Source: Mytilus californianus
Taxonomy: Eukaryota
Direction of reading: 5' to 3'
DNA: 64,000 nucleotides
Assembly (NCBI RefSeq): GCF_021869535.1
Contig: NW_026262593.1
Span: forward strand, 70,866,001-70,930,000
Under the pieces are notes generated by a model, which saw nothing but the letters and a program-made list of their open reading frames with translations, was not told the origin of the DNA and ran no database searches. Positions within the stretch are counted from its first letter, which is position 1. Each line of letters begins with the position of its first letter. Shown here piece by piece: positions 9,500 through 55,457 of the stretch. Position numbers and translations under genes: made by a program.

Positions 9500-9737
9500 A
9501 TGGCAACTTCCAATGTTGTATGTGTATTACATGTATCAGAGGAAGAGGAAAACTATTTAAGAATGCATTTATTGGTGACTGGAATTTCTCAAAGAGCTGT
9601 GCGTATATTATTTGATAAAGAATTTCATCCTTCTCGGTTAGAAGCAACCATTAAAAAGGGATATGTAACACTGTATGACTTAAAAACAAAGCATGTCATT
9701 AACGCAGCTCAGTGGAATTTACTGTTTCCGCGTGGTG
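9500..9737 (+). CDS. Copy 1 coding exon 1: N-terminal part of DZIP3/hRUL138-like HEPN domain
   Basis: MATSNVVCVLHVSEEEENYLRMHLLVTGISQRAVRILFDKEFHP...QWNLLFPRG, donor GTAGGT at 9738. In-frame TAG upstream at 9455. Paralogous to 46637-46856. Confidence 0.9.
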
Positions 9738-10062
9738 GTAGGTATAAGATGCTTAATCCAGTTGACTTATTGTTCTTTTTAAAACTTATCATAGTATTTC
9801 TTACATTATAAACATTTAAACGAAGAAGAAAAAAAGAGATGTATGCTAATGAGTTGACTTGCTAACAACACATTATAGCAAGACAAGCATATAGTGAAAC
9901 TGATTCATAAATCATTTAGATTTGTTAGGTATATAAAAAAATCCGACTAAAAAGAATATTTTCAGAAAGACTTACACAAATGACAAAAAAGGCAACTTTA
10001 TTTCATCCCGTGCAGAATGCTTTTGCAGTTTATTGATAGCACCTAATGATGTAAGTGATTTA

Positions 10063-10542
10063 GGCCCCTATTCTGCCACAAATATAAAGTCCATTATTTC
10101 AAGAGGAAAAGTATTGTAATTGAGTGAATGAAACCCTGAGAAAATATCATAAAATTATTTTTGTAGAGTTTTCTAATAAAGTTTTCCTTCCAAACAAAAC
10201 TGAGAATTTGTGAAATTTGACAAAATCTGCTAGATTTCCCCCAAATGTAGGCCAAGAAAACTTAGAGCACTTGCTTCACCAAACTAAACATAAAACATAT
10301 AATTTTAAAGGGCTTTTGTCGACACCTTCTCTATATGCTTTTGATCCTGAAAACAAATGTCAATTAGCCTGTTTTCTTTGAATATGGATGAAAATTTGAA
10401 ATGATGATCATTGTAACGTCACAGAAAGCTGATACTTAAATTAAAAAAAATATCACATATCCAGTCATTGTTTGATTTATTTTATTCAAATACAATCTTT
10501 AGGATAATAGGTATGACATACTTATTGAAAATGTTTGGGGCC
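10063..10542. mobile_element. Probable PIF/Harbinger (Tourist-like) MITE in intron 1 of copy 1
   Basis: Termini GGCCCC...GGGGCC with TTA on both sides (10060-10062, 10543-10545). Only 6 bp of TIR match. Confidence 0.5.
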
Positions 10543-50561: not shown

Positions 50562-51269
50562 GTAAGGACATACACCTATATTGCGGCAAAATTGTTTTAC
50601 AGGACGCAATGCTCACTTATTTCGACTTGTATCGTATATCTTTTTCTCCAGTTATCCTAGGACCTTTTTGAACCGCTCTTCTCAGAAATGTGTGTGCCAC
50701 TGATCTCTATTACAACATGCAATTTTACTGCAATTTACCATTTAAGTTAGACAGGAAAGATGATTTCCTGATTAACTGAAGTTTAAATCGGATTAGGATC
50801 TCTAAATAGAAACATCATCTGTTCGATGAAACACAAATGAAGTTTGCAGTCCTTTATTTACTTCAATTATATTGATGTGTGGCAAGTTTGTAAGTAAAGG
50901 ATTCAAGTTTTTTTTGATTCAGAAAACAGATAGTTTCCATTTGATATTTATCGCCTGTTTTAATCCTCTCCTATATATAGATATAAGAAATTGTGGTATG
51001 AGTGCCAATGAGACAACTTTCCATCCAAGTCACAATTTGTAAAAAGTAAACCATTTTTCCTACGTGTATGATATAACGGGGAGGCAGATCGACCCTTTTT
51101 GCGATGTTTATTTGTTGTGGTTATTGCTTACATAATAACATGAAACGAACCAATTGTACTGCACCAGACGCGTCTGGTCAATGATGCTAAATAGTAATCA
51201 TTTCTATAAAATAAATTTAATTCTAATTCAATTGACCATTTATTCATTTGTGACTTTTTTATTTTTTAG

Positions 51270-54200
51270 ATAAACACAATAAGATATTGGATCAGTGGCA
51301 GACGAAAGGTATTAATTTTATAGAGACCAGAGCTGCACAATATGTGCTAGAAAGTGTTCATGAAAGTAGTTGCGTAACTATCACAGCTATTTCTGGTGTT
51401 GGAAAGACAGTAACTCTCTGACATGTGGTTTTGAAAATGAAGGATGAAGGGTATGATGCACTACTGGTAACCAATCCACATGACATTGTTAAATTTTACA
51501 ACCCCGATCAGAAGACATTATTTGTTATTGATGACTTTTGTGGAACATATTCTATAAACCAATCTGACCTGAACAGCTGGGAACCGGTAATTAAACTTGT
51601 TGAAGAGATCATTAAAAATAAACTAACAAAAATCATTGTAGCCTGTCGATTACAAGTGTTCAAAGATGAAAAATTTGATTTTTTTAAATTGTTCAGAACC
51701 AACGTTTGTAATTTGTTATCAGATGAGTTGTGCCTGTCACAAACAGAAAAACTATTAATAGCAGAATTATATCTTGAATCAGAAGCATCGGAAATAATCA
51801 AATATTGTGATAGATATGATTGTTTTCCACTTCTGTGCAAATTGAATCATGATAATCCTGAACTTGATAATAGAGATTTCTTCAAAAATCCATTTTCAGT
51901 TTATGAAGCAGAGATAGAACAACTGAGGAAAAACGGACTTTTCAGTAAATACTGTGCCTTGGCATTATGTGTAATGTCTAACAATTGTTTGGTAGAGGGT
52001 GTGTTAACAGATGAGATAGGTACAGCTTTGAAAAATGTTATAGAGAACATATGTGAGGCATGTAAACTAGATAAAGGAACATCAAGGTTAATATTATTGG
52101 ATGAACTTAATTCGCTTGAACGCACATTCATCAAGAAAGAACATGGTGTATACAAAACAATCCATGATAAACTATTTGATTTTTTGTCCTATTATTTTGG
52201 GGAAAAAATGATTAAGTGTGTTATCAAAAATGCAAAAAGTCATTTTATTATGGAAAGATTTTTATTTGAAAAAAGAGACGACATGGACAGCTTCATTACT
52301 ATTGTTCCACCTAAATACCATCAAATGTACATTGAAAGAATGATTGCTGACTGGATTGATTGCAGACTTTTTCCTGTGTTCAATAATAAAAATATGGTCA
52401 TACCAAAGTTTCGACAACTGTTTTTTCGTTATGTGAATGCACTTCATATAGCATTCCAGAGTCAATTAGCACAAACCTATGATATCGATTTCAAAGGTAC
52501 AGTTCTGTTATATTGTAGCTTTAACGGTGATATTCGTTTCACTAAATGGTGTCTATATCATGATGTTGACGTGAACCTCTGTACATACAATGGTGTGAGT
52601 CCTCTACATGCATCATCCCAAGAGGGACATATTGAAATAGCTAAGATTTTATTGAACAACAAGGCAGATACTAATAAGTGCTCAGAAGGTGTAATATGTC
52701 CACTTTTTCTTGCTTGTCAGAACGGATATATAGATATTGTAAATATATTACTTGAAAACAAAGCAGATGTTAATAAGGTTATAAAGACAGGAGAATCTCC
52801 ACTGATTGGGGCTTGTGAGAAGGGATATACAGATATAGTGGAGCTATTATTGAACAACAATGCAGACATTAATAAGTGTGCAGACGGTGGAATACATCCA
52901 CTGTATGTTGCTTGTCAAAACGGACATACTAATATAGTAAATATGTTACTTGACCACAAGGCAGACATTAATAATTTAATAGCTGTAGGATTATCTCCGC
53001 TGTGTATTGCTTGTCAAACAGGACATATAGATATAGTAAACATTTTAGTGGAAAACAATACACACATTAATAAGCATGGAGATGAAGGAGTAACTCCACT
53101 ATTCATTGCTTGTCAAAATGGATTGATAGATATAGTCAGGATTTTACTAGACAACAATGCAGACATTAATGAATGCACAGTTACGGAAACATCTCCCCTG
53201 CTGATTGCTTGTGAGTTTAATCATGAGGATATTGGGAAGTTGTTACTGGACAACAAGGCGGATATCAATAAGTGTCAAGTAACAGGTGAATCTCCACTGA
53301 TTGCGTCTTGTAAAGGAGGATATAAAACTATAGTAAGTATGTTACTTGAGAACAAGGCAGACATAAATAAATGTACAGATGATGGTACATCTGCCTTATT
53401 TATTGCTTGTTTGAATAATCATGAGTTTGTAGTAAGGATGTTACTAGAAAACAAAGCAAACGTTAATATATGTAGACATGACGGAGTATCTCCACTGACT
53501 ATATCTTGTCAAGAAGGGTATAGAAACATAGTTAAATTGTTACTCGATAGCAAGGCAGACATAAATAAGTATACAGATAAAGATATATCTCCACTGTTAT
53601 TTGCTAGTCAGAATAACCATGTTGATATAGCAAAGTTGTTACTGGACAAAAACGCAGATATAAATAAGTGTGCAAATAATGGAACATCTCCACTGATTAT
53701 TGCTAGCCAGAACAATCATTTAGATATAGTAAAGTTGTTACTGGACAACAAGGCAGATATAAATAAGCGTACAGATACAGGAGCATCTTCATTATGTATT
53801 GCTTGTCAAAATGGTCACATAGATATAATACAGCTGATATTGGACAGCAAAGCAGATGTACATAAGTGTAAAGATAATTGGACATCCCATTGTTTCTTGC
53901 TTGTATGAAAAACCATTCAGATATAGTAAAAATGTAAATTGATAACGAAGCAGACATAAATAAGTGTGCAAATGATGGAACATCTCCCTTGTTTGCTGCT
54001 TGTCAGAATGGCAATGTTGATACAGTAGATATTCTATTGAACCACAAGGCAGACATTAATAAGTGTACAGATAATGAAACATCTCCCCTGTGTAGTGCTT
54101 GTCACAACGGTCATGTTGATACAGTAGATATTTTACTTAACCACAAGGCAGACATTAACAAGTGTACAGATAATGGAACATCTCCCCTGTTTATTGCTTG

Positions 54201-55457
54201 TCAGAATAATCATGTTAATATAATCAAGATGTTTCTGGACAACAAGGCAGACATAAATAAGTGTGCAGAAGATGAAACATCTCCCTTGATTATTGCTTGT
54301 CAAAACAATCACAAAGAAGCAGTTAAGCTGTTACTTGATAACAAGGCAAATTTAATAAGTGTAGATATTTTGGAACATCTCCACTGATTATTTCTTGTCA
54401 AGAAGGATACAAAAATATAGTAAAAATGTTACTGGACAACAAAGCGGACGTTAATAAGTGTATAGATAATGGGGCATCTCCATTATTTCTTGCTTGCCAA
54501 TATAATTATATACATATAGTAAAGATGTTGCGTGAAAACGGAGCAGACATAAATAAGTGTACACATAATGGATTATCTCCACTTTTTATCGCTTGCCAGA
54601 AAAATCATATACATATAGTAAAAATGTTACTGGGCAAGAAAGTAGACATAAATAAGGGTTCAGTTAATGAAATTACTCCCCTGTTTATTGCTTGCCATAA
54701 TAATCAAGCTGATATAGTAAAGCTGATACTTGACAACAAGGCAGACATTAATAAGTGCACAGATGAGGGAACATCTCCACTGTTTATTGCTTGTAAGAAT
54801 AACAATGTACATAAAGTAAAGCTGTTACTTGACAACAAGGCAGATATAAATAAGTGCACAAATGAGGGAACATCTCCACTGTTTATTGCTTGCCAGAATA
54901 ATAATGTACATATAGTAAAAATGTTACTGGACAAGAAAGCAGTCATAGATAAGGGAACAGATAATCAAACAACTCCGTTGTTTATTGCTTGCCATAATAA
55001 TCAAGTTGATATAGTAAAGCTGTTACTGGACAACAAGGCAGACATTAATAAGTGTTCAGATGATGAAATATCTCCTCTGTTTATTGCTTGTAAGAATAAT
55101 CATATAGATGTAGTAAACTTGTTACTGGAAAAAAAGGCAGAAATCAATTTATGTAATTGGAGTTGTGTATCTCCTTTATCTGAAGCTTGATATGAAGGGC
55201 ATATAGATATTGTAAAAGTATTATTGGAGAAAGGCGCAGATTACACAACGAAAGCTATAAAGAATAAAAATGATGCGGAAGTATTGATGTTATCACCCGA
55301 ACAAATAGCTAGCGAATATGGTCACCCAGATATAGCAGCTTTAATATTTGAACATTCTAAACAAAAGCAGAAAGAAGCAAGACTTTGGTATTACTGGATC
55401 TTATTTTCTGTTAGAATCGCCAAAATAATCATGGAACACACTATAAGTAATGTATGA
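51270..55457 (+). CDS. Copy 3 exon 4: nSTAND3-like NTPase, helical region and ankyrin array (interrupted)
   Basis: AG at 51268-51269. Walker A TAISGVGKT followed by CTC TGA CAT (copy 1 has CTC CGA CAT), Walker B LFVIDDFCG. Covers ORFs 51425-53908, 53989-54387, 54426-55190 and 55224-55457. Confidence 0.92.

Follow-up and report, generated by a model that had tools for sequence, protein, structure and literature searches.

Does a stretch of mussel DNA that has the outline of a cluster of RNase-armed immune receptors still encode such receptors? The stretch in question (the window) comprises 64,000 nucleotides (nt) of Mytilus californianus (NCBI RefSeq assembly GCF_021869535.1, contig NW_026262593.1, positions 70,866,001 to 70,930,000 of the forward strand), is AT-rich (~32% GC) and contains zero runs of N. 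An initial annotation, made from the letters alone, had described here a tandem gene family joining an N-terminal HEPN domain, a STAND NTPase and an ankyrin array, and had likened its products to nucleotide-binding leucine-rich repeat (NLR) proteins and to the Avs defence proteins of bacteria. That layout and that analogy are upheld by Pfam matches, fold searches and conserved motifs, and the reading of the genes themselves changes: the window probably holds a tandem cluster of three old HEPN_DZIP3-nSTAND3-ankyrin paralogues, all of them non-functional as receptors in the assembly. They belong to a very large, lineage-specific mussel expansion within the STAND proteins of effector-NTPase-sensor layout. 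Of the three, copy 2 is a truncated relic and copy 3 a pseudogene with several separate lesions, while copy 1 is a recently disabled allele, still transcribed and spliced, whose product as it stands is a sensor-less HEPN and NTPase protein of 426 amino acids (aa).

Gene structure and lesions of the three copies

Searches with blastn and tblastn place three members of the family in the window, in tandem and on the same strand, in agreement with what had first been proposed.

9500-17654, + strand: copy 1 (blastn, tblastn, Pfam)
29411-31920, + strand: copy 2 (blastn, tblastn)
46637-55457, + strand: copy 3 (blastn, tblastn, Pfam)

When the copy 3 block is compared with the window by blastn, four collinear matches to the copy 1 block are found at 70-81% identity, and copy 2 is matched only in part (52143-54469 with 29445-31787). 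The four matches, copy 3 first, are as follows.

46648-46876 with 9529-9757
47729-47976 with 11272-11519
50451-50568 with 13438-13555 (exon 3, 81% identity)
51282-54349 with 14583-17628

A four-exon layout is common to copies 1 and 3 and to annotated Mytilus proteins such as P0007 (M. trossulus, 1182 aa), of which residues 1-77, 76-153, 151-190 and 190 to the end map by tblastn to the four exons of both copies. AG acceptors, GT donors and phases agree at all borders except the exon-2 donor of copy 3. The tblastn matches and splice borders show the HEPN domain to be divided among three small exons (238 nt in copy 1 or 220 nt in copy 3, then 230 and 97 nt), as the initial annotation had held.

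9500-9737, + strand: copy 1 exon 1, ATG at 9500, N-terminal helices of HEPN_DZIP3, donor G/GTAGGT (tblastn with P0007 and P0009)
11280-11509, + strand: copy 1 exon 2, HEPN core (Pfam and an RNA contig from run X8)
13452-13548, + strand: copy 1 exon 3, C-terminal HEPN helices (tblastn, AG/GT borders)
14571-17651, + strand: copy 1 exon 4, nSTAND3, helical/winged-helix region and ~18 ankyrin repeats (Pfam)
46637-46856, + strand: copy 3 exon 1, ATG at 46637, donor G/GTACGT (tblastn, weak HEPN_DZIP3 match)
47737-47966, + strand: copy 3 exon 2, HEPN core, donor AT (Pfam)
50465-50561, + strand: copy 3 exon 3 (blastn against copy 1, tblastn, borders)
51270-55454, + strand: copy 3 exon 4, nSTAND3, helical region and ~27 ankyrin repeats (Pfam)

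Searched against Pfam, the open frames return HEPN_DZIP3 (PF18738), nSTAND3 (PF20720) and Ank in that order, the three families that had been expected. The HEPN_DZIP3 match of exon 2 is strong in both copies (4.9e-22 and 78.7 bits in frame 11255-11527 of copy 1, 1.3e-20 and 74.1 bits in frame 47718-47975 of copy 3, against a cut-off of 27), and the exon-1 frames add weak, sub-threshold matches to profile positions 1-46 (1.4e-4 for copy 1). For nSTAND3 the scores are 2e-27 and 96.3 bits in copy 1 (frame 14546-15283, cut-off 27.2) and, for the part of copy 3 that lies 3' of its stop, 3.8e-15 and 56.3 bits (frame 51422-53905). Everything 3' of nSTAND3 matches ankyrin families. The four motifs named in the initial annotation are likewise located in copies 1 and 3.

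11432-11449 and 47889-47906, + strand: RNQLAH of the HEPN domain, copies 1 and 3
14693-14710 and 51392-51409, + strand: SGVGKT (Walker A), copies 1 and 3
14819-14836, + strand: LFVIDN (Walker B), copy 1
51518-51535, + strand: LFVIDD (Walker B), copy 3
14933-14950 and 51632-51649, + strand: IIVACR (sensor-1 Arg), copies 1 and 3

Copy 1 has Asn at the second acidic residue of Walker B, where the family consensus is LFVIDD, and the intact protein P0007 is identical to copy 1 there. This position influences hydrolysis in other STAND and AAA+ proteins.

Ankyrin units recur every 99 nt, and the long arrays described earlier are evident from this period and from Pfam, with ~18 repeats in copy 1 and ~27 in copy 3 where 19-29 had first been given. 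Among the Pfam matches there is neither NACHT nor NB-ARC and no LRR, with nSTAND3 and ankyrin present instead, and the genes are NLR-like by layout only, outside the strict definition of an NLR. Nor does any piece give a kinase or KEN match in Pfam, which sets the genes apart from the RNase L/Ire1 class.

None of the three copies retains an uninterrupted effector-NTPase-sensor coding sequence. In copy 1 there are two lesions, a +1 frameshift in a run of ten A residues (15229-15238), where copy 3 is one base shorter, and an in-frame TGA (16389-16391) at a point where the ankyrin repeat normally carries glycine. The open reading frame (ORF) that begins at the ATG of copy 1 is 426 aa long, ends at a TAA (15284-15286) and covers HEPN, the core of the NTPase and some of the helical region beyond it. 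In copy 3 the lesions number six: its exon-2 donor (47967-47968) is AT rather than GT (GGG/ATGAGA versus GGG/GTAAGA in copy 1), a TGA (51419-51421) lies three codons past the lysine of the P-loop, the register of the 99-nt repeats reveals 1-nt deletions near 53890 and near 54345-54360, and further stops follow at 53935-53937 (TAA) and 55188-55190 (TGA). Even with exon 2 spliced, the copy 3 ORF is 232 aa. Proteins of 1215 and 1578 aa, which copies 1 and 3 had been said to encode, are obtained only by reading through every lesion, and that claim is withdrawn: with the frameshifts, the stops and the lost donor, the ORFs are 426 and 232 aa. Introns as the source of the frame changes in the large exons were considered and rejected, the gaps being only 0-1 nt and the events single-base ones. 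Alternative donors for exon 2 of copy 3 were also rejected because an in-frame TAA occurs within four codons.

Copy 2, already described as decayed, consists of the end of the helical region and ~20 ankyrin units, interrupted by several stops and by frame changes (frames 3/1/3/2). It is truncated at its 5' end, where homology begins abruptly at 29411 (the counterpart of copy 1 position 15411 and copy 3 position 52109), and a low-stringency tblastn search (E=5) for HEPN or NTPase exons 5' of this point found none.

Transcription and allelic state of copy 1

Four public sequencing runs were aligned to positions 11000-16900, two of DNA (X1 and X3) and two of RNA (X8, which carries the same species label, and X21). 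The contigs of X8 are confined to exons, with a depth of zero in the introns. One X8 contig of 465 nt fits 11279-11510 with its positions 226-457, in exact accord with the predicted acceptor and donor of exon 2; 225 nt of the contig precede this match, as many as exon 1 should supply, and another 8 nt follow. Around exon 3, depth is found on the exon only, and the joint departs exactly at 13548. Two further X8 contigs, 14674-15220 and 15273-16388, are 99.2% identical to the window. The raw RNA run X21 contributes five reads only on copy 1, all of them on the P-loop block common to paralogues. Thus copy 1 is transcribed and spliced. Within intron 2 of this copy, a segment at 12379-12772 is a high-copy repeat, with an X1 word depth of 1200-2900 versus ~31 in the single-copy flank.

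The reference haplotype of copy 1 is disabled. Of the sampled words, 92% are present in X1, and a 3518-nt DNA contig of that run spans 14943-16900 with 0 differences and 0 gaps, supporting both the run of ten A residues and the TGA. X3, another sample from another study, has a DNA contig (15625-16900) that keeps the TGA at 16389.

Several points weigh against taking this haplotype as the state of the gene throughout the species, or the gene model as complete. X1 may come from the assembly's own animal, and therefore does not count as independent support for the A run. X3 does not bridge that run, since one of its contigs breaks off at the ninth A (15237) and the following one starts at 15242. 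The X8 contigs end 9 nt before the run, restart 35 nt after it and end again one base before the TGA; contigs drawn from an assembly graph end at branch points, and variation at both lesions is therefore possible in X8. Alleles without one or both lesions may exist. With respect to splicing, the X8 joint, an ambiguous one, runs from 13548 to 14669 rather than to the predicted acceptor at 14571, so that the junction of exons 3 and 4 is weakly supported; of the exon joining first proposed, the borders of exon 2 are seen in RNA and the exon 3-exon 4 junction is left in this weaker state.

The strongest alternative to the reading of a broken cluster follows from these observations, namely that copy 1 still works as a gene in this mussel species, its lesions being a null-allele polymorphism or errors in the reference haplotype, and that other individuals carry an intact receptor of about 1.2 thousand amino acids (or of ~790 aa). 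Such an account draws on the correctly spliced transcript of X8 and its 99.2% identical haplotype, on the exact coincidence of contig breaks in X8 and X3 with the two lesions, on the position of the frameshift within a mutable homopolymer, and on the presence of only two lesions in a gene that, compared with copy 3, has a ratio of nonsynonymous to synonymous substitution (dN/dS) of 0.2-0.34. Against it stand the X1 contig, which carries both lesions without difference, the TGA kept in a different sample, X3, and the fact that a contig of an alternative allele was seen in none of the runs examined. A living copy 1 is therefore possible, though somewhat doubtful, and the broken cluster is preferred.

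The predicted effector and the NTPase

Because the window copies are fragmented, structures were predicted on an intact homologue, P0001 (M. edulis, 976 aa). The model of its N-terminal region (P0001:1-192, 70% identical to copy 1) is all-helical, with a predicted local distance difference test score (pLDDT) of 88.7. In Foldseek searches it aligns with residues 385-567 of the predicted mouse and human DZIP3 structures at template modelling (TM) scores of 0.73-0.75 and E-values of ~2e-6 (best 1.6e-6). VIA-align, a method independent of Foldseek that was run against 48,161 chains, ranks Csm6 first (Z 7.4 over 111 residues, root-mean-square deviation 3.1) and Cas13 second, and its 50 best matches also include the archaeal HEPN protein AF_0298, AbiF, a second Csm6, Swt1, LsoA and Cas13a. 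This enrichment of HEPN proteins among the 50 best matches is notable, and an N-terminal HEPN fold is probable; RNase activity is predicted from the motif.

Three observations weigh against the nuclease reading. Foldseek finds no match to the HEPN model in the PDB. The Z-scores of the HEPN matches lie below 8, a range that the makers of VIA-align regard as not decisive for helical bundles. Finally, no demonstration of RNase activity, nor any functional or biochemical test, of a DZIP3-type HEPN domain was found in the literature searched. The main rival to the nuclease reading is that the domain is not a nuclease at all and serves as an RNA-binding or adaptor module, as in the RNA-binding ubiquitin ligase DZIP3, signalling by recruitment. 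The sole strong structural match by Foldseek is indeed predicted DZIP3, with no solved HEPN RNase, and of the papers on corals and Aplysia, which describe the same type of fusion, the coral paper terms the HEPN domain 'RNA-binding'. Yet the Rx4H motif with Asn after Arg, by which catalytically active HEPN RNases are recognised, persists in 62 of the 64 mussel homologues that have a recognisable HEPN anchor (among 120 listed), in both window copies that have the domain, and, as Rx4-6H, in 194 of 202 pearl-oyster HEPN proteins (PMC9646362); alignment A1 shows hardly any variation at residues R131, N132 and H136; and the HEPN RNases Csm6, Cas13, AbiF and LsoA are enriched among the top structural matches. 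A purely non-catalytic domain is accordingly judged unlikely, and a nuclease remains the preferred prediction. An exception within the family is P0007, which has RNSLAQ in place of RNxLAH and has lost the His.

The NTPase and helical region (P0001:189-616, pLDDT 88.3) gives 154 PDB matches at E<=1e-3, led by the SIR2-STAND protein EfAvs5 (9jap) and followed by NLRP3, NOD2, Apaf-1, Dark and plant NLRs, and the model has the nucleotide-binding, helical and winged-helix layout of solved STAND proteins. Its structural neighbours in the ESM Atlas are bacterial clusters with nSTAND3 and Mrr_cat and cnidarian clusters with NACHT, HEPN_DZIP3 and LRR. A profile of the same region searched against PDB sequences finds only chance-level P-loop matches. 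The NTPase is of the nSTAND3 type, with bacterial Avs5 as its nearest solved structure.

It is very improbable that the 426-aa product of copy 1 is itself functional, either by entering oligomers of full-length paralogues as their helper or regulator or through slippage at the A run that restores the frame in some transcripts, for although a transcript is present whose premature stop, lying in the last exon, should escape nonsense-mediated decay (an escape that would explain the transcript), and although HEPN and nSTAND3-only proteins of 537-641 aa are annotated in Mytilus, the ORF stops inside the conserved helical region ~110 aa short of the shortest of these, slippage has no evidence in its favour, and the downstream TGA would still remove the array.

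Family history, related systems and proposed mechanism

The window copies belong to a populous family. With the NTPase and helical part of copy 3 as query, a word-index search returned 351 proteins, and all 120 of those listed come from Mytilus edulis, galloprovincialis, californianus, trossulus or coruscus. Most of the listed homologues carry PF18738, PF20720 and Ank, with a best identity of 67-68%, and GxGK[ST] is kept in 116 of the 120. They are named 'uncharacterized protein' in RefSeq and 'DZIP3-like HEPN domain-containing protein' or 'Novel STAND NTPase 3 domain-containing protein' in UniProt, so that the domain combination does appear in automated bivalve annotation, as had been anticipated. 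An exhaustive profile search counts 2074 clusters at 50% identity for E<=1e-3, 1073 for 1e-10 and 555 for 1e-30; eight sampled representatives (E ~1e-86 to ~1e-67) are all from Mytilus, six with all three domains and two with nSTAND3 and Ank. Variation in architecture also occurs, since P0003, P0010 and P0015 have an insert of 130-300 aa, probably a coiled coil, between HEPN and the NTPase.

Copies 1 and 3 share ~65-67% protein identity and are no closer to one another than to P0001 or P0002. Both fall within one 14-member subclade with 99% support in the Shimodaira-Hasegawa-like approximate likelihood ratio test (SH-aLRT), in which they are not resolved as sisters. With a dN/dS of 0.20-0.34 and a dS of 0.7-1.06 between them, most of their divergence has taken place under constraint. 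The two copies therefore appear to be old paralogues that were disabled late. The annotated Mytilus HEPN_DZIP3-nSTAND3-ankyrin proteins have the same domain order, the same exon boundaries and the same subclade, with 65-72% identity over HEPN and the NTPase, and differ from the window copies in being intact ORFs where the latter have frameshifts, stops, a lost donor or a truncation.

The block from the P-loop to sensor 1 (14670-14970 in copy 1, 51368-51667 in copy 3) has a pattern of its own. Copies 1 and 3 are 83-87% identical there at the DNA level versus 61-80% over the rest of exon 4, contigs of many paralogues in all four runs begin to match abruptly at 14667/14669, and the X1 word depth of the block exceeds that of single-copy sequence ~14-fold. 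The pattern may stem from gene conversion or from exceptional constraint on the block throughout the family, silent sites included.

Two dispersed repeats are also found in the window. The first, which lies between the gene copies and has an open frame, is present in five copies that are 83-95% alike.

20189-20623, - strand: interspersed repeat
23583-24199, + strand: interspersed repeat
28601-28916, - strand: interspersed repeat, adjoining the truncation point of copy 2
35021-35739, + strand: interspersed repeat
45028-45410, + strand: interspersed repeat

Its ORF at 35194-35739 matches no credible family in Pfam or the ESM Atlas. The second repeat, of ~170-295 nt, occurs in both orientations at 77-87% identity.

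1178-1472: second repeat
1762-2056: second repeat
36571-36865: second repeat
59118-59295: second repeat

The architecture itself has a longer history. Anantharaman et al. (2013; PMC3710099, Table 1) listed fusions of DZIP3-type HEPN domains to ankyrin, NACHT, DEATH and LRR, with lineage-specific expansions in oyster and Nematostella, and, for HEPN-NACHT/DEATH proteins of the CXorf38 family (section 16), took RNase L as the model for a proposed apoptotic or defensive response in which RNA of the cell or of a virus is degraded. In a pearl oyster, Takeuchi et al. (2022; PMC9646362) counted over 50 NACHT proteins that begin with a DZIP3-type HEPN domain, arranged in haplotype-variable tandem clusters. 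The mussel family resembles the fusions of bivalves and cnidarians (PMC3710099; PMC9646362; Noel et al. 2023, PMC10236652) in its N-terminal HEPN domain with Rx4-6H, its STAND NTPase and its C-terminal repeats, as well as in lineage-specific expansion, in tandem, haplotype-variable clusters and in the RNA-degrading immune role proposed for it. Those papers, however, centre on NACHT with LRR, TPR or WD40, whereas the mussel copies have nSTAND3 and ankyrin. In the literature searched, no paper on a mussel nSTAND3-ankyrin expansion was found, and the papers on gene presence/absence variation in mussels leave HEPN, ankyrin and STAND unmentioned. The idea of an RNase-armed, NLR-like invertebrate STAND receptor, with which the initial annotation closed, thus survives in its architecture, loses its novelty, having been proposed computationally in 2013 and 2022, and finds no intact gene here: the window copies are new, broken members of a family whose architecture and RNase hypothesis were already published.

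Two better-characterized systems invite comparison. One is Avs5, a bacterial defence protein that has been studied by experiment and whose NTPase is nSTAND3 (bioRxiv 10.1101/2025.07.08.663546). Avs5 (AVAST type 5, SIR2-nSTAND3-TPR/Sel1/PPR) shares the PF20720 NTPase and the effector-NTPase-repeat logic of the mussel family, and among solved structures it gives the best match to the NTPase-helical module of the mussel proteins (PDB 9jap) at a sequence identity of ~12%; in the ESM Atlas, too, the structural neighbours that lie closest to the mussel NTPase outside the molluscs are bacterial nSTAND3 clusters. The two differ at both ends, with an NAD-consuming SIR2 effector (or Mrr nuclease) and a TPR-like sensor in Avs5 where the mussel proteins have HEPN and ankyrin, and Avs5 acts in a bacterial host on a phage trigger. 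RNase L offers an analogy only: ankyrin sensing and ligand-driven dimerisation activate an RNase of the HEPN superfamily (KEN is placed within HEPN in PMC3710099, Table 1), but the order is reversed, with an N-terminal sensor and a C-terminal RNase, a pseudokinase occupies the place of the STAND NTPase, and the active form is a dimer of the KEN family rather than a STAND oligomer with a DZIP3-type HEPN domain.

The analysis demonstrates the component domains and the conservation of their catalytic and nucleotide-binding motifs; from the protein families to which these domains belong, we infer that intact members sense a ligand, oligomerise, cut RNA and serve in immunity, most likely through the induced-proximity scheme common to STAND proteins. 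Binding of a non-self or danger ligand by the ankyrin array would relieve autoinhibition and release the Avs5-like NTPase to bind ATP and oligomerise, whereupon N-terminal HEPN domains would meet as dimers and form a composite Rx4H site. Cleavage of RNA by the paired motifs would then lead to translational shutdown or cell death. In its most far-reaching form, which is speculative and distinctly doubtful, the family would be the mussels' animal counterpart of Avs5, with hundreds of HEPN-armed, ankyrin-sensing nSTAND3 receptors killing or silencing infected cells by RNA cleavage, encoded at birth-and-death, presence/absence-variable loci where null and intact alleles segregate and where copy 1 is live in some individuals.

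To these ideas the locus itself adds little, because computational papers have described the architecture from 2013 onwards, public annotation already includes hundreds of intact paralogues and the three copies here are broken. It yields instead a revised gene model, an inventory of the lesions and a disabled copy that is still transcribed, a small case study of gene birth and death. If the wider scheme is true, the family would be an animal STAND immune receptor with a built-in RNase effector on the NTPase clade of Avs5 and another defence module common to bacteria and animals, and it would help to explain why mussels have so large and so variable a repertoire of immune genes.

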